Source: Octopus sinensis (taxonomy: Eukaryota). From it: DNA of 64,000 nucleotides. A program made the translations under genes and the position numbers. The notes beneath the pieces were generated by a model that saw nothing but the letters and a program-made list of their open reading frames with translations, was not told the DNA's origin and ran no database searches. The stretch covers positions 161,014,001 to 161,078,000 of the forward strand of contig NC_042998.1 in assembly GCF_006345805.1 (NCBI RefSeq), in the 5' to 3' direction. Positions 9,196 through 46,600 of this stretch are shown one piece after another. The stretch's first letter is position 1. Each line of letters opens with the position of its first letter.

Positions 9196-9232
<37 letters not shown>

Positions 9233-9281
9233 CAGAGAGAGAGAGAGAGAGAGAGAGAAAGAGTTTATATATATATATATA
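9196..9281. repeat. compound (TA)n/(GA)n/(TA)n microsatellite
   Basis: Read directly from the sequence. Confidence 0.95.
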
Positions 9282-13158: not shown

Positions 13159-13976
13159 TGCATATAAACATGCACATGCATTCACCAAAATCCTCAAAAC
13201 ACAACATTGCACATCGCAAAGTTTCTTTAGAAATCCTAAGGAGGAAAATTTAGTCTTCAGAAATTGAATGTGTGTGTGTATGTATGTGTGTGTGTGTGTG
13301 TGTTCATATAGGCGCAGGAATGGCTGTGTGGTAAGAAGTTTGCTTTCCAACCACATTGTTCTGGGTTCAGTTCCACTGCGTGGCACCTAGGGTAAGGGTC
13401 GACCAAAGCCTTGTGAGTGGATTTGGTAGATGGAAACTGAAAGAAGCCCGTCACATATATAAATATATATATGTGTGTGTATGTTTGTCCCCCCCATCAT
13501 CGCTTGAAAACCAGTGTTGGTGTGTTTGCATCCCTGTAACTTAGCGGTTAGGCAATAGAACCGATAGAATATGTACTAGGCTTACAAAGTGTTGGGTTCA
13601 ATTTGTTTGACTAAAAGTAGTGCCCCAGCATGGCTGCAGTCAAATGACTGAAGCAAGTATAAGAATAAAAGAATTAGTGCTTTTTTTGTTATCACCTAGC
13701 TTAAAAACCTTATCTAGCATCACATTCATGCATATAAACATGCACACGCATTCACCAAAATCCTCAAATCACAACATTGCACATTGCAAAGTTTCTTTAC
13801 AAATGCTAAGGAGGAAAATTTAATCTTCAGAAAATGAATATATATATATATGTGTTTGTGTGTGTGTAAGTGTGTGTGTGTGTGTGTAAGTGTGTGTGTG
13901 TGTGTGTGTGTCTGTGCGTGTGTTCATTGGTGCTTTTTTGTTATCACCTACCTTAAAAACCTTATCTAGCATCACA
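13159..13976. repeat. two-unit tandem duplication (~200-250 bp unit), first unit interrupted by a SINE
   Basis: A1 13159-13307, SINE, B1 13675-13724, A2 13729-13927, B2 13928-13976. The unique part of A differs at 7 of ~111 positions between the copies. Confidence 0.92.
13311..13674 (+). mobile_element. tRNA-derived SINE (type 1; resembles octopus OK-like family)
   Basis: A box tggctgtgtggt, B box gggttcagttcc, body ccaaagccttgtgagtggatttggtagatggaaactgaaagaagcccgtc, and an aagaataaaagaat tail. Homologous to 20912-21308 on the opposite strand, with a ~20-bp internal deletion relative to it. Confidence 0.9.
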
Positions 13977-17475: not shown

Positions 17476-20400
17476 CTAAGATTTTATGATGATGGTGGGT
17501 TGCTAAGAAGTTAGAATTTTCTTCATTCAGTTTTGTAATGATCAGGGTAAGATATGCGTTAGCAGTGAGGTTAAGTATCTACCGATAATATAAAACCTGT
17601 TTGAATACTACCCTGAATCTGACAATGTATTATGTATAAAAATAACAACTGAAATTATTGTAAAAAAAAAAATAACATATATCACAGAAAATAATAGTAT
17701 TTTGAACTATCTAATAAGTGTGGTATCATTTAAAATTTTTTGAAATTTCATAAAAGGAAAATAATTATTTGTCAAGTTATGAGAAAATTATTATTTTAAT
17801 AAAAAAAACAAAACAAATGTGTGTGAGTGTGTGTATTGATTATGATTTGATTTTGAAGCTAATCTAAATTATAAGAAAATTATAAAAGTAAATAGCTGTT
17901 TCATAAGCTATAAAAACTATATCAATAAATGTCTTGGCAGACTATCTTCTAGGTCATGTTGGCTAACAAGAAAAGTTGAATTGAGATTTTTAAGAATAAA
18001 CATGGAAATGAGGTATAAGGAGAAGAATAAATAAATAAATTTTAACAATAATTATAAATTTAGAAAAAAGAAATTGCTAATTTTGAATTAGGGTTAATTT
18101 ACTTATAATTTGCTAAACATTTTTTTACTGCTTGTCTTGCTTGCTTTTATAATTAAAATACTAATTTTGATTTCAATCAACAAAAGATAATTGCAAGTAA
18201 TTATTTTATGTTAATATTTATTATATTTATGTAAAAGCGTTATGTAATAATAAATAAAATAGAAATGCTGTAAGACAAGAAAAACACAGGAAAGAGAATC
18301 AGGAAAACAATGTAGTATTCCATGAGCATTTATTTGATGATAAACATAATTACAGTGCGTGTGCACTTCAAACAGTAATTTTGCTGGCTGTAGCTATAAA
18401 AGCACTATCATACTATCAAAAAGTACCAGATATCTTGGTACATTCTGTAACTTGAAATGGGAAATACTAAATGCCACTTATTACATTCAAAGCATTTGAA
18501 ACTAAAATTGTCATTGAGAAATGGACATAAATTCCAAAAGGAATTGCCAGGATAAGGAATGCATTTTAAAGTGAAATGCTCTTAGAAGATTTTACAGTCA
18601 ATCCAATTCTAACACTCAATTTGTTGCTGTTGTGAATGACAAAAGCAGAACATTCTGTCCAAAATCAATAGTATGATCTATTTCTTGTTACACTGGCAAT
18701 TGTATCCTATTGGTATTAACAGCAAGCGTTTATGAATGATGAAATTAATTTTGAGAGCAAGTATTCCTACAGTAGACTTAAAAGACAAAAATAAACCCTC
18801 AGGGTATCTATGTACACAGGTGGCTAGTATCATGGAACCTTCTGAGACTGAGTGATGGTTTAGTGTGGACATTGGACATGACAAGCAGAAGGCTGTAAGC
18901 AATTTACATCAATCATTGATCACAGAAGTCTGGTGCGAAACCAAAAGAAAAGTAAAAAGCCACACCCAATGAATGCCTGTAATGTAGCATGTTGAGATAA
19001 AGGAAGTGAAGAGAAAAAAGTATCATGAAGCAAAGAGGAAATTCCTCCACTTGAAAGAAGGAAAGTTTAAAAAATCATTGTTCTTGGTTTAGTTAAATAA
19101 TTTGCATAATAAAAGTTTATAATTCAACAGATATGGATAAATATTTAAACAAATCCTTATATTTAAGAGCACAGATGTGTGGATATATACACATTTGTAC
19201 AAAGACACGCACATACATATAGTATACAAGGCGAACTAATAGAGTTGTGAAAATGATGGAATAATTGTTTTGCAGTATTTGTGCTGGTTCTCTAAACCCT
19301 GAGTTTATATCCATACAAATCCAAATTTATTAACCTCTGAAAAACAAATAAAGAACTAGCCCAGGGCAGGCACAGGTAGAATAACTAAAATGTCAAACAA
19401 GATGTCTTGTGGTATATGTAAGTATGCATGTGTGTGTGTATATATATACTTATATATATATATATATATACACACACACATGTGTACAGAGTATAATTTT
19501 TGTTATTAATGTATACATAAATGACTCACATATACATACATACCACCAAACATATATATATATACATGTATATATATATGAAAAGAGAGAGAGAGAGAAG
19601 AAAAGAGGAGAGAGAGATGGTGGTAAGAGGCAGTAGAAATAGTTTTATATTATTGCTGGCACTGTAATACAGGTGTATCTTCTCTGAGGATTGAATTTAG
19701 GAATAAGTTTTAATTTCCGTTGCTAATGCTCTTGTTAAAGTCATAGACATCATAATTTGTTACTTCCCCATCCCAACCTAAATCGTTATATCTACATAAA
19801 GCGATATATGAATGTGAATGTGTATGTGTGTATGTTTGTCTGTGTGCATGAAGGGGAAAAAAATGTAGGCGTGAAGGAAGTGTGCCATGGAGACAGAGGC
19901 AAATATGTATGTCTCTCCCAGTGACTATCAAAACAAAACATATTTCAGCATGAAATAACTGTGTGTATAAATTTTCTCCATGTGATTATGATTTTAAAAC
20001 AATAGTCTGAGAATATAATAATTAATCTTCTAATACTTCAATCAATCCTTAAATGTTGCAGAAGTTCATTAACTAAATGCAATAATCTAGTCTAAAAGAA
20101 ATAAAACACTATTATAAAAATTACAAAGATCTGATTATTATTATTGTTGTTGTTAATAATAATAATAATAATAATAACAACAACAATAATAGTAATAATA
20201 TAAAACACATACATACACACATGCACACATGCCATGCAGAGTACAAGTTAAATGCAATTAATTTTAGCTTTGGAGTATTCCACGAAGGCAATAGTAGAAT
20301 GGAGATGGAATGAGAAAGCATAACAGACATCATATCAGGAAAGGGCTTACAACTGTCATCAGCTAGCTCATTCCCTAATTTGGACAACAAGCTAAAATAT

Positions 20401-21917: not shown

Positions 21918-21950
<33 letters not shown>

Positions 21951-21952
<2 letters not shown>

Positions 21953-22755
21953 CATCATCATCATTTAACGTCCGTTTTCCATGCTAGCATGGGTTGAATG
22001 GTTCGATTGAGGTCTGGGAAACCAGGAGACTGCACCAGGCTATAGTCTGATCTGGCAGTGTTTCTATAGCTGGATGCCCTTCCTAATGCCAACCACTCTG
22101 TGAGTGTAGTGAGTGCTTTTTACGTGCCACTGGCATGGAAGCCAGTTAAGGCGCCACTGGCATTGGCCACATTCAGATGGTGCTTTTTACATGCCACCAG
22201 CATGGGTATCACAACTACAATTTCCATTTGATTTTCATTTTTATGCTGATGTACTTTACTCAATAGGTCTCCTCAAGTACAGTAGGTCACACTATGATCC
22301 ACGGTACTATTGAATGGGCTGGGGCTGGTTATGCAAAAGCCGTGAACTCACTTTATTTGCCAGGTCTTCGCAGTCACAGAGGTTTCGATCTTTCAGTATT
22401 GCCTCTGTGAGGCCCAACGTTTGAAGGTAATGCTTCACTACCTCATCCCATGTCTTCCTGGGTCTACCTCTACCCTGGATTCCTTCAACTGTTTCGGAGT
22501 GCACTTCACACAGCTCTCCTCATCCATCTGTAAAACATGACTATACCAGCGCAAACGTCTCTCTTGCATGCCACATCCGATGCTTCTTATGTCCAACATT
22601 TCTCTCAGGGCGCTTACACTCTGTCGTGTGTGCACACTGACATTACACATCTAGCGGATCATGCTAGCTTCATTTCTTTCGAGCCTACGCATGTCCTCTG
22701 CAGTCACAGCCCATGTTTCACTGCCATGAAGCATGGCTGTTCGCACACATGCATT
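21951..22755 (-). mobile_element. RTE-clade LINE 3' end (ORF C-terminus, 3' UTR, (ATG)n tail), pseudogenised
   Basis: Translates across stops and frameshifts to ACVRTAMLHGSETWAVTAEDMRRLERNEASMIR*MCNV...RRLRWYSHVLQMDE...GRGRPRKTWDEVV, the typical RTE C-terminus. It ends in gatgatgatgat abutting (TA)15. Confidence 0.9.
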
Positions 22756-22938
22756 GGAAGAAAGAGTGAGAGAAAGTTGTGGTGAAAGAGTACAGCAGGG
22801 TTTTCCACCATCCCCTGCCGGAGCCTCGTGGAGCTTTAGGTGTTTTTTCTCAATAAACACTGACAACGCTCAGTCTGGGAATCGAAACCGTGATCCTATG
22901 ACCATGAGTCAGCTGCCCTAATCACTGGACTATTGTGC

Positions 22939-22940
<2 letters not shown>
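22756..22940 (-). mobile_element. tRNA-derived SINE 5' part (type 4), joined directly to the RTE fragment
   Basis: The minus strand reads ggcacaatagtccagtgattagggc (A box) ... ggtttcgattccc (B box) ... ctcactctttcttcc, then switches abruptly to RTE coding sequence aatgcatgtgtgcgaacagcc. Confidence 0.8.
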
Positions 22941-22984
<44 letters not shown>

Positions 22985-37050: not shown

Positions 37051-39618
37051 ATAATAATTATTAGAACCTTGTATATTATAAGAAACAAGTGCAAAGTTGA
37101 CAGAAAGTAAGGCATATGAGAAAGAGAAAAGGAAAGAAGGGTTTTAGGGGAAAAAATAAAGAAAAAGGGAGTGAGAGAGAATGAACTATTAAACTTATTA
37201 CTAGTCTTATATTAGATGAACATACTTTTTGTTTAATTGTATAAACAATACAATTTTACATTAAATTATCTATTTGACTTGTCTGACTTCATACTTGATA
37301 AACTAGTTAGAAATTATCCATTCAGAAAAACGCCTAAATAGTTGTTCTTATTTTAGAAATGATATATTTATAGTTAAAACACATCACTTCATAGCAATAT
37401 GAATGTTAACATGCAAATATTTTTATAAAATAAATAACAAAAGTCAATAAAAGTAAATTAATCTTCATAGCTGAACATTAAATATAATCAGCCTAGTAAG
37501 CTGTCAATCTCAAAATGACAATACATAAATTGCTCTTGTCACCACAATAGATTATAGTGGCATTTTGATAAGAAGATAAACTAAGCATGGTCACTAATTA
37601 CACAAAGCTTCATAGTTTAAAAAATATGGCAATGTTTGAAGCTAGTTTACAATGTTAAAAGTGCTTTAACTGATTTCCCTGGCAGGCATCAATTGTAATT
37701 CTTTCTATTGACTAAATTACGGCTATTCCCATTTCAACATGTAAATAATAAAAACTAGAAGATACAGATGGCAAACATCCCTTTAATAATAATTTATAAT
37801 TAAAGTAAAATAAAAGGGAAATAATTAGATCAGTGTTGAAAGATAATTAAACAGAAACAAATAATAATTTGTGTACAAGATACTGGTTAGACACTTTTCC
37901 TAAAAAATACACCTCATACTGCTAATAAAACAGTTTAAAGCAATAAAACATCGATTTGGAAACTATGACAGCTTCAAGAATGGAGGAGAAAAGAAAGAAG
38001 AAAAGAATGGTAACAGACAGTGATATTATGTGTGTGACAATTTAGGCCAAATAAGTCAACAATATTGTCATTGATTCATCTGAATATTTTTATTGACACA
38101 ATAAATTAGGGTTAACAGGTCATAAAACCTATACAATAGTGAAACAAAATAGAATTAGAAATCACAGTCACAATCAGCGGACATGACTTACACAGAGAAT
38201 AATGCAAATAATCCTTGAACAACAAAATTTTGTTTGATTTTTAACAATTTTTTTTTATATGACAGACCAACATATATATTTGTCTTTTACTTTATTCAAT
38301 AAACTTGAATATTATATTTTAGTTTTTGCTTTAAAATATTTAATAAATAACAAACTATTTCTGTAAAAAAAAAGCCAAAAAAGGTTTGAATTTTTTTTTA
38401 TCTAAAAGTTCGTAAAGACTAAGGGATGGTGTAGATGATATAAGGTTGAAAAAATGACACAAAGGGCCCTTTATGGCAAATGAAAGGTATGTCTTTTATA
38501 TGCAGAAAGTGACCTGTTTTCATGATTCATTGAATGAGCAGCCATGAGAGACTGCTGAACAATAGTCACTGTTTTATTACGGATACAAGCACTGGATATC
38601 AATTGAAACATAAAAAAAGGACAACATTTTTTAATAATAATGATCAAAGCAGCAACTAACAATAGTGTGATAGTAAAAATATGTTATCAGATTTTTTTTT
38701 GTTGTATTTAGGAACCCAATGTAATGACTTTCTTGCAGCAGATTATGTATCAGCCCCCACCATACCACACTTCACCGCTGCTGCCACTGCCACCGCCACC
38801 ACCACCACTGCCATCAGCCCCACCGCCATCATTAGTTTAATGTCCATTTTCTCCATGCTGGCATGGAACACTATTAATATGGAAGCTATTGAAGTTCCTA
38901 CAACCATAAAGAACTAGATATGTTTAACAAGATATTGTTTTCACACAATTATGAATACCTAATTTATTAGGAAATATTTTAGTTACTCTTATGGCAGTCT
39001 TATTATAGTAACACAACGCTAAAAGATTAGAGCATTCATTATGCTTATTCATACATATTCAAACGCAGTGAATGTGGCTCTGTTAACAAATTTTCAATAG
39101 AAGAGTAAAGTGTTTTATTTGGAAATTCTTATTTCATTCTGAATTTTAACTTTAATAGAAATATTGTTTTGTTGTTGGCTTCAATAAATCTTCTAGGTTA
39201 TCTTTTTTTTTTTTAGTTTTGATTTTCAAAGTTTGTCAACATTTACACTTGAAAACAAATATGTTTCCTTTGTCCTAAAAATGTGTAACTGAAAAACCTG
39301 ACAGCAGTCTATAGGCTGATATCAATAAAGAATAGTGATTCTGACTGAAATATTTGAGGTGAACTAAATGGTACAACAAATGCGGTTGATTATTCAAAAA
39401 TGACAATGGTTATGGGACAGTAAGTCTGAGCTGGAGAACATTTTTAGTAATGGAGACAAATTGTTAGTACATGTGAACCTATAGGCAGATTTTAAAAATT
39501 TATAGGTATTCAATTATTTTAAAATACCATTTTGTCTTGCAAGCTTAAACCATTTATTCTTTTCAAATTTTTAGGGACATCACCAGTGGATGCTTTCAAA
39601 TATATATATATATATATA

Positions 39619-39779
39619 TTCCTTTACCTCCTCTATTTCATCACTGCTGATCACCATTCGATCTGTTGGTACGTTGTCTGACTGCATGAACTTAGTATTC
39701 ATGCAGTTCATCTTGAGACCTACTGCAGTGTTTTTGATGTCGAGCTCTGTCAGCATGGTCTGAAGCTGATCCATGGTTT
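39619..39779 (-). mobile_element. RTE-clade LINE, inverted 5' segment (RT domain part)
   Basis: Open minus-strand frame DQLQTMLTELDIKNTAVGLKMNCMNTKFMQSDNVPTDRMVISSDEIEEVKEY. This is the RT segment that follows the ADD motif and directly precedes the YLG motif found on the plus strand. Confidence 0.9.
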
Positions 39780-39793
39780 GATCCATTGTATTG

Positions 39794-40380
39794 ATGTCTA
39801 CCTGGGACAGGAAGTGAATATGTGCCAAGATATCAAAAAGGAGATCTCATGGAGAGCAAGGGCCAGATGGAAGGTGTTTAATGGCATAAAGGATATGCTC
39901 AAGGGAAGGTTGGACAGGACCACCCGCGCCAACCTCATCAACAGTACAATTCTACCTGCAATGTTATATGGCTGTGAAACATGGGCTACAACAAAGAGAG
40001 AAGAGCAGAGACTGGTAATGGCTCGAAGAGCCATGGAAAGGTCAATGCTTGGTATCTTGTTGAGAGAGCACATCAGTAGCGAGATCATCAGAAAGAAGTC
40101 CGGTGTGAGCGATGTCATTGTAGAGTATACACGCAGCAATTTTAGATGGGCTGGACATGTCGCCCGGCTCACCGATAATCGGTGGGCCCGCGTAGTTGCC
40201 GAGTGGTACCCGCATGAGCGGAAACGACCACCCAGAAGGCCTCCACGACAATGGAGTTATGATTTCAGGAGGACGATTGGGATCACGTGGATGAAAAAGG
40301 CGCGATCCAGAGAGAAGTGGACAGCGTGCTGTGACCAGCGGTGTCAACTGGACGCCTGACGGACTGGTCGGTCAAGGTGA
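39794..40380 (+). mobile_element. young RTE-clade LINE 3' segment (ORF C-terminus plus 21-nt 3' UTR)
   Basis: Uninterrupted frame VYLGQEV...ILPAMLYGCETW...FRWAGHVARLTDNRW...EWYP...KRPPRRPPRQW with stop at 40357-40359. It is about 50% GC and CpG-rich, and (TA)10 follows. Confidence 0.95.
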
Positions 40381-40800
40381 TATATATATATATATATATA
40401 TCAATATATAATATTGATATATATATTATATATGCATAATATCAATATGTTATATAATATTAAACAACATATGTTTTAATGAAATATTATACATAACATT
40501 ATTGCATGTAATTAGAGAAAATCTTAAAGATAAACATGCTGAATAAATCTGGTTCTCAAATATGTATATGTGAATGTGTGCATGTTGGCAAAAAGATTGT
40601 TAGTAAATATCTACATCAAACAAATGTAGTTTGTGGTATTTGCTTCTATGTAAGTTACACCTCATTACACTCAGACTGACTTAGCCTTTCCTTATGGCCC
40701 CTATCTCATCACTGAGACCAAAAAGAGGAAAACATAGTGAAGGAAAGAAGAAGAAAAGTAAAAACAAACGTTTCTATATTTAACTTCAAACTGTTATACT

Positions 40801-41034: not shown

Positions 41035-42494
41035 AACAGGATTTAAATTTGAGTAAAAATATGAAATATAGTTAAGAAAATACCACAAAATTTATACTAA
41101 ATGAGGTAAAATACTTTTTTGCTATATAGGAATGTAAGTGAAATTCTGTGTCTAAATTTTTGCTATATTTGTCACATAAGTATAATATAGCCTTCCGTTC
41201 TCCTTTCACAACTAAGTTTGTTTTATCATTAGTTAAGAAATGGTCATTATGTATATAAGAAACATGGAGAAATATTTCTTTTGGAATGGATTAATTTCCA
41301 GAAAAGAAAATAATCAAGTGAAGAGTGGAGGTCGAAACAAATCCATCCTGTCTTGAAACAATATCTTCTAAATAACAGCATATCAAAGACATAAGATTTC
41401 AACAAATATGAATTTGATTTCAAATAACAGTTGTTTTAAATAGATTGAACTTTAATCTTCAATTTCTGATTCATTCAGTTTAGATATAATTCCTCAACTG
41501 CAGCTGCTTCTCTTTTCAGGTTTTTCATTTCTTTCTTTCTCTCTTTTTCTTTCTTTCTTTATTTATAGAATAACATCTAATTGAATATCACAACTGGATT
41601 CAGTCAATGACAGAACACATAGGGTTAATCACATCACTAAGGAAGCATTCGCTTCATTGGGAAGTGAAGCAAAAACAGCAAGCGTCTTGAATCAATCTAG
41701 CTAATACCAACCAGTTAAGACGCAAGTTGAGCATGACCGTACTTTCTGGTTGATACTAACAATATAGAATTAGTGTGTTCTTGAAACGACATCGAAGGTA
41801 AGCTACTAATATCAAAATGGCAAGATAGTAAATATAATCCTGCCATTGATAAACATTGATTGTGACTGCAGAGAAATCATATTAAGCTGATACCCTGAGC
41901 ATTCAGAAATTGATTGCGTTCAAGCAACTGCTGGAATCACAATGACAGCATAGTCGGCCATAGTCTTCATGTGGCAAGGGACGAATGAAAAGAGAATGTC
42001 TTGTATCTTAAATAGAATAGAGCTGGATACTGATAATACTGTCACGTTACCATTAGGAATTCTTGTCTGTTCTTTCACTAGCTGCTTCTCACACTCACTG
42101 ATCTCTTAAGCAATAAGTCCAATCAAGCTATGAACTCATAGGAGCAAACTTAGCTCTCAAATTAGAGGGATTTGAAATGAGAATACTGTAACAGTTTAGA
42201 AGTATTTATATAATTTCTTCACTAAATGACCGAGAAATAAAAGAATGCATTCTATAGAGAAATTTATAGCAACAGCTATCATAATCTCTAATCTTATGAA
42301 AAAGTCAGAAAAAGTTCAAATAATAATATAATATAAAGTTAAAATAATAATATTATAATTTCATGAAAGGACTGAAGCCACTATTAATTAGTATTAATGT
42401 ATTCAAGAAGAATATGCATACATATATATGTGTGAGCATGTGTGTGTGTGTGAATGTGTATGTGCATGTGTATGTATGTGTGTGAGTATATATA

Positions 42495-42535
<41 letters not shown>

Positions 42536-43462: not shown

Positions 43463-43507
<45 letters not shown>

Positions 43508-43510
<3 letters not shown>

Positions 43511-43718
43511 TTTTCTACTCAAGGCACAAGGCCTGAAATTTTGGGGGAGGGAGCCAGTCGATTAGATCAACCCCAGTACACAACTGGTACTTAATTTATC
43601 AACCCTGAAAGGATGAAAGGTAAAGTTGACCTTGGTGGAATTTGAACTCAGAATGTAAAGGCAGATGAAATATCATTAAGCATTTCGCCTGGCATGCTAA
43701 TGTTTCTGCTAGCTTGCC

Positions 43719-43724
<6 letters not shown>
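43508..43724 (-). mobile_element. tRNA-derived SINE (type 2), well preserved
   Basis: The minus strand reads aaggtggcaagctagcagaaacattagcatgcc...ctgagttcaaattccacc (B box)...cctttcatcctttcagggttgataaattaagtaccag...aggccttgtgcc. It is flanked by (TA)n on both sides. Confidence 0.9.
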
Positions 43725-43774
<50 letters not shown>

Positions 43775-43795
43775 ATATATATATACATATATATA

Positions 43796-43836
<41 letters not shown>

Positions 43837-43844
43837 CATATATA
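43725..43844. repeat. ~120-bp impure (TA)n tract
   Basis: Read directly from the sequence. Confidence 0.95.
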
Positions 43845-43944
43845 TCATCATCATCATCATCATCATTTAGCGTCCGCTTTCCATGCTAGCATGGGTTGGA
43901 CGGATCAACTGGGGTCTGTGAAGCTGGAAGGCTTTGTCAGGCCC
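43845..43944 (-). mobile_element. severely 5'-truncated RTE 3' end (~100 bp)
   Basis: catcatcatcatcatttagcgtccgctttccatgctagcatgggttgg closely matches the 3' terminus at 21951-22000. It is flanked by (TA)n. Confidence 0.8.
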
Positions 43945-46600
43945 ATATATATATATATATATGTATTAACATAGAAAATGTGACAGTGTGGTATGCAAAT
44001 CACTTTCAGAACAATTTAAATACACTAATATGATAGGCTTTCGAAATAAATATTTACATGTTTTACGAATAAAAGTTCTTCATTTAATGGCGAAGTTGTA
44101 CAATGTATGTTACCTAAAAACATAATAGTAGCAGTGGGATTTGAAATAATGATCAACATTTTTACATTTTAAAATGTAGTAAAGTTTCAAGTGTGTGATT
44201 ATTACCCTGCATAGAAGTGTATTTCAAGTAATGATACAACCAGAAGAAATTTGACTTGGGAGTTTATTCTGTTCTAAGTAATAAACTAAGTAAATATTAA
44301 GTTATCCATATTGTTCTCTACAGCATCTGAAATCTGCTGCAATGAACTGAACTAGTTGAAAACATTGACTTTTAGAAATAACTTTGCAAATACACATAAA
44401 CTGTCTCCAATATAACAAGATGTGGCAGACAAGCCAAGTATTATGAAATTAATTCCTTCAGTAATGTGCAAGCAAGGCTTCAGATACTTGTGTTTAGCTA
44501 GCTGAGTTGTGAATAAAGACAACAGCTTAAAACTGGACAAAGAGTGCAACAAAGCACAGAAACTTAATAGTAAAAGATCAATTGATTGATTAAATGTAAT
44601 GACACTTCAACTTAACATGTGGTCTGTCTTTTCACTTAATTTCTTAAGCATGAACATTGCAAGACAATGTAAAAGTAGTAATAAAAAATTTAAAAAGTAT
44701 TCAACTGAAAACAAGGAGGATGAAACTAACAATGTTTAAGTTGTTGCTTGCAAAAGTAATTTTTTAATGTTTTACAAATGATATTCATGAATTTATTTGA
44801 AATTATGAAGACTTAAGCAATGAATCAATACAGTAAGTGATCAATTAATTTGATATGTTATAAATCATATTCTTCATGATAAACCTCCTTAATCAAATTA
44901 TCTTTTATTTGGTATGCTGAATGACAATCTTTATAAACTAAAAAAAAAGAATGTGTACTGGAGGTACTAAATAATGTTGTACTTATCTCTATTTAGTTTT
45001 AAGAAAAACTTCTATCTAGTCATATTTAATTAACAAAACATAACAAATTAGAATTTAATTTCTTTTGATTTATATTAAAAATGAGTTTAACAATTCATTT
45101 CCCAAAATTTTATTACATTTTAGAGTTAATGGATGGTACATCATCACTATAAGATATGCGTCAGCTTTTGTTAAGTATTATGTAAGGGCTAAAGACATCT
45201 TCAGGATTCAGTACTAATCAAAACACACTATAATGAGCTCCCTATAGCTGATATCTCTTAAATTATTTAGATAGAGCTTAGAGCAACAAACTTACTGAAC
45301 ACTTCCTCTAGCAGCCTAATATAATAAGTAAAAGCTGCTCCTAACTATTAAATCATAGGGATTCTTCATAGCTAAACAATTCTTTTCACTATAATAGAAT
45401 TAGTGTGCTAATGAGGTTTCTCTCCGCTGAATGAGATAATCACAAAGCAGTCTTATAAGTTTGCAGTTAAAAATGGAATGAAATAAATGACCATGGGTAA
45501 ATAGACAATAAATACCAGTTAAATGTAATCAAGGCAATAAATAAATTGAGAAACAGTTAATTCTTAGGTTTATATAGTGATTGATTTATTTGTTCATTTA
45601 TTTACTTTCAGAACTAGCCAACATACAAATGAGGTGGTTATCTGATTAATACCAACCTTAACCAAACCATCATCATCATCATCAACAACATCTTAATGTA
45701 CTGTTTTTCTATGGAGATATGTTGGGTAGGTCTACCTCTCATCTAAATTATTTCTCATCTCACCTAAGAGGACAAATATTTTAACACTGTCCTTTTATCA
45801 GTTGTCAGGTGAAAACCAAATTAAAACTTTAATACAGTATCACATGATAAGTAAAGTGTTATAGCCTAGAAGTGGCTGAAAACTGTTCAGTTTCTTCATT
45901 TCTAATTCTTGTAGATTGTACATTCAATGCAAAGGGTGTTGTGACTAGTGTGTTTCCAGTAGTAACTGCATAATAAAACATTAATTGAGCGATGTTTGAC
46001 AAATACTGCTTCTAAACATAAATAAACAATGTGATTATTAGAGTGAGGACAGTATAAATGTGTAACTAGTTTCTTAGGTATAATAATAAACTCCCTAATT
46101 GCAATATCTTTGCAAGAGAAAGGTAGAGATAGTTCACAGAGAAAAAAACGATGGATTTTGGTAATGGATGACCCTGTTTAAGAAAAAACAGTATCTTCTT
46201 GACACACGACCTTCTAGAGTTAGATGTAATTCCAGATGTGGTTGTGATGGTTCATCAACGATAAGATTAAGAATATTCTTGAACTACTTAATCATAAAAT
46301 CTTAAAATCTTCAAGGGTGATTTTAGCAATAAAGATAGCATATTCTTGAATAATGTATTGGGTAAAAATAGTTGCGTATGGTCGAAGTAATAATATACTA
46401 GGCAGTATACCCATCACCAACTAAAAATTTACCCAACATGTGAGAAAATGACAAGCATGTTTTAATAAAAGTGATGTGATGTTCAAAGCAAAAATAGAAT
46501 TAAAAGTACTAGTTTTTGGTGAGTATGTATGACTGTGCTGTGTTTTTCTCTTTTTTAATCATCGGTTTTGAAAAGAACACACACACACACACACATTCAT

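Follow-up and report, generated by a model that had tools for sequence, protein, structure and literature searches.

A 64-kb stretch of the Octopus sinensis genome (contig NC_042998.1, positions 161,014,001 to 161,078,000; hereafter the window, in whose positions all coordinates are given) contains a dead copy, about 760 bp long, of an RTE-like retrotransposon that sits in a TA microsatellite and has its first ~160 bp flipped. Two pieces of one open reading frame (ORF) lie in opposite orientation, they abut in the coordinates of the element, the 3' end is complete and there is a TA array at both ends. Twin priming is a known accident in the insertion of long interspersed elements (LINEs). The best explanation of this geometry is probably that the RTE-like element retrotransposed once, into a (TA)~15 microsatellite that was already there, and that twin priming completed the insertion. 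The whole layout was read over 39301-40800 and is as follows.

Up to 39599, left of the element: unique AT-rich flank (unique by repeat check).
39600-39619, no strand: left (AT)10 array, target microsatellite, presumed target-site duplication (TSD) and putative 3' end of the top-strand primer (Tandem Repeats Finder (TRF), regular-expression search, sequence).
39619-39780, minus strand: inverted 5' piece, coding for reverse transcriptase (RT) (translation, tblastn, DNA alignment to the relatives L002 (78%) and L001, protein alignment).
39781-39795, no strand: filler at the internal junction, atccattgtattg(at) (TRF, period 12, 2.3 copies; repeat search).
39796-40359, plus strand: sense 3' piece, 187 codons from VYLGQEVNM to CDQRCQLDA, with a TGA stop at 40357-59 (ORF listing).
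40360-40379, plus strand: complete 20-nt 3' untranslated region (3'UTR) with a single tail unit, cggactggtcggtcaaggtg (homology to the 3' ends of relatives, ...GACAGACTGGTCGGTCAAGGTA followed by ATCAAGGTA).
40380-40401, no strand: right (AT)11 array, target microsatellite, presumed TSD copy and putative priming site of the first strand (TRF, regular-expression search, sequence).
40402 to ~40460, no strand: degenerate TA-rich tract, remainder of the pre-existing microsatellite (TRF, rows of period 2 and period 33; repeat search).

The inverted piece reads (Q)TMDQLQTMLTELDIK...SSDEIEEVKE on the minus strand and has no stop codon. The minus-strand frame from 39792 to 39619 translates as NTMDQTMDQLQTMLTELDIKNTAVGLKMNCMNTKFMQSDNVPTDRMVISSDEIEEVKE, with the next Tyr read from 39618-16; for the piece itself the frame can also be given as ...(Q)TMDQLQTMLTELDIKNTAVGLKMNCMNTKFMQSDNVPTDRMVISSDEIEEVKE, and the Tyr codon that follows is the first TAT of the array. 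We call the outer end of this piece x, its inner end y and the start of the sense piece z. The outer end lies at 39619 (GAA); this position, and possibly 39616-18, are common to the array and the element (the A of GAA and the TA(T) of the Tyr codon). The inner end can be placed securely as far as 39777 (ACC), and an extension to 39780 (CAA, where relatives have GAA) is plausible. The frame of the sense piece is open throughout and the plus-strand ORF reads ...IDVYLGQEVNM...CDQRCQLDA*; homology is secure from GTC at 39796, and the 'AT' at 39794-95 is not securely element-derived. All three positions were set by relatives that are 60-78% identical. Immediately to the right of the insertion there is a near-perfect AT-rich palindrome, ATATATATATCAATAT-ATA-ATATTGATATATATAT, at 40392-40426 (arms 40392-40407 and 40411-40426).

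A protein search with the joined translation of the two pieces gave 22 relatives. The best of these, P0001, is a Scleropages formosus entry with 71% amino acid identity; next come an ENA protein at 61% and then several turtle proteins. Those relatives that extend upstream carry Pfam RVT_1. The two pieces themselves, being too short or C-terminal to this domain, had no match in Pfam. In the protein alignment IEEVKEY and VYLGQEVNM join without a gap in all ten homologous proteins, and across the join P0001 reads IEEVEEYVYLGQEVNM. The closest DNA relative, the Logan contig L002, matches the inverted piece at 78% identity and the sense piece at 75%. On this contig GAA (39621-19) falls at position 1230 and GTC (39796) at position 1234, with exactly one codon, for Tyr, between them. 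The join EEVKEY/VYLGQ is likewise gap-free against four DNA relatives. The Tyr codon at the join is TAC in all four, and the window reads TAT. This suggests that the TAT may belong in part to the array, so that the loss or duplication at the breakpoint lies between -3 and +2 nt.

Both pieces rank their relatives alike (P0001 > P0005 > P0002 > P0003). The sense piece is 73% identical to P0001 and 64% identical to P0002 at the amino acid level. The inverted piece is less similar to the relatives, and in this region the relatives also diverge more from one another. Both pieces are open frames and both are richer in GC (inverted piece, 0.44; sense piece, 0.51, with 27 CpG) than the flanks (0.28-0.32) and the window as a whole (0.31). 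The higher GC and the two unbroken frames, which total ~245 codons, point to an insertion that may be fairly young. The copy itself is a dead, 5'-truncated and 5'-inverted product with no function of its own.

An earlier note, made from the letters of the window, had described a minus-strand RT frame from 39779 to 39619 (DQLQTML...IEEVKEY) that runs into a TA array, and this frame is present as described. It had also placed the start of the sense piece at 39794. The plus-strand continuation VYLGQEVNM and the TA array at the 3' end are confirmed, but secure homology begins only at 39796. Its proposal that the pieces form an uninterrupted EYVYL with almost nothing lost agrees with the gap-free join in ten proteins and four DNA relatives; given TAC in the relatives, it has to be restated as a loss or duplication of -3 to +2 nt.

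Two unrelated fragments of a ~3-kb element would abut within +/-3 nt by chance in ~0.2% of cases, and an exact 8-mer would be repeated 12 bp away at a given junction with a chance of ~1e-4. Additionally, both ends of the element abut a TA array without a gap, though the 64 kb contain just 19 (TA)>=7 arrays, 433 bp in total. Chance juxtaposition of the pieces, the arrays and the junction repeat is excluded.

The TA arrays could be the tail of the element or the DNA into which it inserted. RTE-type elements have very short 3'UTRs that end in simple repeats (PMC2887409, PMC6007223). The sense piece carries a normal 3' end, as its 3'UTR is homologous to the termini of the relatives L001, L013 and L014. 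In L013 (70% amino acid identity) the 3' end reads ...GACAGACTGGTCGGTCAAGGTA ATCAAGGTA and then ATATATAT, the tail of relatives also being written (ATCAAGGTA)2. The tail is (ATCAAGATA)2 in L003, (GATACAGT)2 in L004, (TTCGAAA)2 in L001 and a single unit in L014. The tail units of the relatives are thus 7-9 nt long and none is (TA)n. The window copy ends in ...GGTCGGTCAAGGTG, which is one such tail unit, and (AT)11 follows directly. Taken together, the tails of the relatives and the single unit of the window copy show that the TA arrays on either side come from the target; the 3' ends of the relatives rule out that the element had a (TA)n tail of its own. With (AT)10 on the left and (AT)11 on the right, the flanks are compatible with a (TA)n TSD whose length is not readable.

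Two further observations were made on the 3' ends of the relatives. The sequence after the tail in L013 (L013:575-600) hints that TA-rich targets may be a trait of the lineage and not peculiar to this genome. The metagenome RTE relatives L003 (1790-1893) and L004 (3150-3252) have different tail units, and both continue into a common sequence, TAAGTGAATGTTTGCTGGCTTGCC. One repeat family could have been hit more than once at the same position, or the two elements could have a downstream module in common.

The inner junction differs from the outer one: the outer junction is seamless and the inner junction contains filler. The sequence tgatccat at 39767-74 and 39779-86 lies at the heart of an imperfect tandem duplication of 12 bp (TRF, repeat search), in which 39779-39790 (tgatccattgta) copies 39767-39778 (tgatccatggtt) at 10 of 12 positions. 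TTG at 39791-93 together with ATGTC recreates the 8-mer TTGATGTC, and the repeat search places the other copy of this 8-mer 57 bp away at 39734-41. In the protein alignment the minus-strand reading of the junction, NTMDQ, stands where all relatives have a conserved VLIAE or VLVAE after FADD. This argues that 39781-39795 is filler and not sequence of the element. We considered whether the inverted piece might instead reach the FADD 'GAC ATC' at 39798-39793. The length would be collinear with the relatives, but the intervening 15 nt match at only 5 of 15 positions and give NTMDQ for VLIAE, and this placement was rejected. The filler of 13-15 nt looks locally templated and is probably of the kind that end-joining polymerases leave. 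Such local imperfect copies are compatible with end joining, which is not specific to twin priming.

A single twin-primed event would account for these features in five steps. The element's endonuclease would have nicked the bottom strand within (TA)n, and the 3'-OH would have primed a first cDNA on the 3' end of the RNA (...GGUCAAGGUG/A), running leftwards from 40379. A nick in the top strand ~10-12 nt away would have freed an overhang ending in ...TATATAT-3'; TSDs of RTE elements peak at 10-12 bp (PMC4245944). This overhang may have annealed to the RNA at ...GAA-UA(U/C)-GUCUAC, where the last 3-4 bases and 6-7 of 9 in all would pair, and primed a second, antisense cDNA, which would be 39619-39780. 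The first cDNA would have ended on meeting that primer, at GTC 39796, and this would explain why the two pieces abut. Finally, host end joining would have linked the 3' ends of the two cDNAs with the 13-15 nt of locally templated filler at 39781-39795. Of all 9-mers in the 749 nt that are retained, the x-site, ATATGTCTA, is the one most complementary to (TA)n (7/9 if the codon was TAT, 6/9 if it was TAC), although the test is partly circular. The terminal microhomology at x is 4 nt if the source codon was TAT and 3 nt (ATA) if it was TAC, as in all relatives. The asymmetry of the two junctions is what twin priming predicts, namely a clean priming junction and a repair junction.

Several points weigh against this explanation. 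There is a single copy, and both of its junctions are those of the assembly. With (TA)n on both sides, the limits of the TSDs cannot be read. At the inner junction there is no clean microhomology, and that at x is just 3 nt if the source codon was TAC, the codon of all four DNA relatives. The exact positions of x, y and z rest on cross-species relatives that are 60-78% identical. Additionally, 5' inversion in experiments has hardly been seen except with human L1 in human cells (PMC4245944).

The element might also have inserted as an ordinary 5'-truncated sense copy in (TA)n, its first ~160 bp being flipped later through a pair of breaks or a template switch during replication. The breakpoints would then be the boundary between array and element and the ATAT at x/z, aided by palindromic, break-prone AT repeats. 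This inversion in situ would make use of the self-complementarity of (TA)n, through which the array and A-TA(T) at x have an inverted microhomology of 3-4 nt; an AT-rich palindrome adjoins the locus and filler such as that at the inner junction is typical of end-joining repair. However, one break would have to fall exactly at the boundary between array and element, and there is no TA residue between y and z. The break at x/z would have to have spared every base on both sides, though the other junction shows processing, and the repeat search found no inverted-repeat arm at the right edge of the flipped segment (39781-95). Two events would be required where twin priming requires one, and we regard inversion in situ as unlikely. 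It is very unlikely that the element is really collinear and that the assembler flipped a short segment beside the palindromic (TA)n. Such arrays are hard for assemblers, but the flipped piece is just ~160 bp of unique, GC-rich sequence, and a misassembly would not create the specific filler (a 12-nt imperfect copy plus TTG). Inversions made in assembly normally lie between two repeat arms, and there is none at 39781-39795.

Two independent insertions of one family into the same microsatellite in opposite orientations, followed by a deletion, were rejected as hardly conceivable. Since (TA)n seems to be a recurrent target in the window, nested or adjacent insertions are plausible in general. 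Copies of retrotransposons without long terminal repeats (non-LTR elements) keep their 3' ends, however, and the inverted piece has none and stops at an internal position. That it should stop within 3 nt of the start of the sense piece has a chance of ~0.2%, and an exact deletion would be needed besides. The pattern of relatedness is the same in both pieces, and the cross-species evidence already indicates that they are contiguous and equally diverged. We also rejected, as scarcely more credible, an origin of the left array from the tail ('dual priming' or tail priming), in which the top strand would have received an inverted copy of a (UA)n tail of the element and a template jump to x would have followed. 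Inverted and direct (TA)n tails look alike, and variants of this kind have been described for L1 poly(T) loci (PMC2837659). The tails of relatives are nevertheless (ATCAAGGTA)n-type units and not (TA)n, and the window copy ends in one such unit. The model requires a further template jump, past the entire 3' piece, and the degenerate TA-rich tract of the right flank pre-dates the insertion. Finally, the two pieces share no sequence with each other in a self-comparison of the window, which rules out a fold-back (snap-back) cDNA or an inverted duplication.

Twin priming is what the earlier note had read from the layout. The inverted 5' piece, the sense 3' piece, the intact 3' end and the adjacent breakpoints bear this out; the copy is a single one, and inversion in situ and assembly error stand as rivals. 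The note's proposal of insertion inside a (TA)n microsatellite has been strengthened by the non-TA tails of the relatives, by the right flank, which is TA-rich to ~40460, and by three other TA-bracketed retroposons (see below). Its suggestion that the array supplied the primer microhomology at x is upheld in part: the site is complementary over 3-4 terminal nt and at 6-7 of 9 positions, but the AUAU depends on TAT, and the relatives have TAC. The 8-bp tgatccat duplication that it had seen at the inner junction is there in both copies and is better seen as part of 13-15 nt of templated-looking filler.

The window copy retains only the C-terminus of RT. L001, a decayed copy, has an endonuclease-like GDFNA... 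motif upstream of RT. This motif, with the short 3'UTR and the unit-repeat tails, is consistent with a tentative assignment as an RTE-like element (a non-LTR element of the type with an apurinic/apyrimidinic endonuclease, APE). There is also a C-terminal RP-GRP--RW motif, which is known from BovB. There are no other copies of the family in the 64-kb window, in which the only matches were to (TA)n and to an unrelated old RT fragment at 22.4-22.8 kb. A scan of metagenomes gave no same-family copies, only relatives of at most 61% identity. None was found in genome contigs by protein scan or exact 22-mer, or in viral contigs by exact 22-mer, and no exact match of the window ORF, from either start, is on record.

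The closest named RT relatives are from a bony-tongue fish (71% amino acid identity) and turtles (53-57%) (P0001, P0003, P0006 and P0007), and the window is AT-rich DNA of invertebrate style. This is compatible with the horizontal spread reported for elements of the RTE clade. L014 is a 2.2-kb ENA contig in which a 403-amino-acid gene of the N6_Mtase family (67-1278) lies directly beside a decayed RTE fragment (1400-2000) with an in-frame stop at EEV*SY. It could be a chimeric contig or a eukaryotic locus.

The 19 (TA)>=7 arrays found by regular-expression search make up 0.68% of the window, and 8 of the 19 adjoin a retroposon end. Three further retroposons are bracketed by TA on both sides, which makes four with the RTE-like copy:

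21921-22984, minus strand (element 22961->21951): composite retroposon between (TA)11(GA)11 and (TA)15.
43509-43724, minus strand: tRNA-like short interspersed element (SINE) between (AT)17 and (TA)17.
43846-43944: copy of the '...catggaaagcggacgctaaatgatgat' element, truncated at the 5' end to ~100 bp and with (ATG)7 as its tail; a TA array on one side and (AT)9 on the other.

The composite consists of a tRNA-like SINE head (ggtttcgattcccag), a decayed RT C-terminal fragment (MLHGSETWAVT...) and a 3' region ending in ...ggaaaacggacgttaaatgatgatgatgat. Its RT fragment is ~30% identical to the RTE relatives, and a protein search with this fragment (at ~22.7 kb) gave ENA matches and one acoel match. 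Neither Rfam nor a search of the literature for the SINE motifs gave a match. Both downstream retroposons lie within 43475-43962 of the window. Insertion into (TA)n looks like a habit of retroposons in this genome. This preference is drawn from four loci in one window, and an endonuclease preference for AT-rich DNA, or fragile DNA, could account for it. Compound microsatellites of (TA)n with (GA)n, (GT)n or (CA)n are also frequent (9196-9281, 13838-13900, 19440-19480 and 42440-42530).

It is conceivable, but rather doubtful, that the RTE machinery in this genome prefers (TA)n, that the self-complementary overhang can pair with any AUAU in the RNA and that twin priming is thus regular for the elements it mobilises. 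If true, 5' inversion would be a property driven by the target sequence and not one specific to L1 and its host. If an RTE-like copy in nature was 5'-inverted by priming from a microsatellite overhang, twin priming would extend to another LINE clade. Possibly more useful is that four (TA)n-bracketed retroposons point to a target preference that would shape the landscapes of transposable elements and microsatellites in this genome. One dead copy alone has no functional consequence.

To our knowledge, twin priming has rarely been reported outside mammalian L1. Ostertag and Kazazian reportedly described twin-primed (5'-inverted) L1 insertions in human and mouse in 2001. The twin-priming layout and its junction features have been described for L1 (PMC2912911, PMC2837659), and 5'-inverted L1 copies are also treated in PMC4245944. 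As in this copy, the inverted 5' and sense 3' fragments of twin-primed L1 insertions are nearly adjacent in element coordinates and the 3' end is intact. The L1 insertions also have microhomology at the outer 5' junction and an internal junction resolved by end joining, to which the 3-4 nt at x and the filler of this copy may correspond. In contrast with the L1 cases, the element here is RTE-like and without poly(A), its tail being a short unit repeat. The primer is an overhang of a (TA)n microsatellite and not an A/T-rich L1 target, TSDs cannot be delimited, and the internal junction has 13-15 nt of templated-looking filler and not simple microhomology. Our literature search found no pairing of twin priming with an insertion of the RTE clade; the study likeliest to have looked (Ichiyanagi & Okada, 2008) lay outside its coverage. 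With that limit, the literature searched agrees with the earlier note, which knew of no documented case for RTE elements. The mechanism is a known one, and what is described here is a single genomic copy of an unusual LINE clade.

Non-LTR elements that target microsatellites are known in the R1/R4 group (Dong, Waldo, Mino), where sequence specificity has been demonstrated. They resemble the present case in inserting within a simple repeat, as several retroposons of the window have done in (TA)n; they belong to other clades, and the preference here is an inferred one. The likeness to RTE LINEs from Lepidoptera (PMC2887409) and from plants and animals (PMC6007223) extends to a probable APE-RT ORF and short unit-repeat tails in the relatives, to the 20-nt 3'UTR, and to frequent 3'-partial copies that are associated with microsatellites. 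Unlike in those elements, the associated (TA)n is not the element's own tail, as it lies on both sides and is thus target DNA.

In experiments, all 5' inversions but one, a Nimb-2_DR event, came from human L1 in human cells, and ZfL2-1, which has 5-bp TSDs, gave none (PMC4245944). The same authors argue that overhangs of at least 10 nt are necessary for second-strand priming and that inversion depends on the LINE species, host factors and overhang length (PMC4245944). The window copy is consistent with this 'long overhang' idea. The Nimb-2_DR insert, in chicken DT40 cells, is like it in being a 5' inversion in a non-L1 LINE with an intermediate TSD (~12 bp) (PMC4245944). That insert was an experimental de novo event of an I-group element from zebrafish, whereas the copy described here is a genomic fossil of an RTE-like element.

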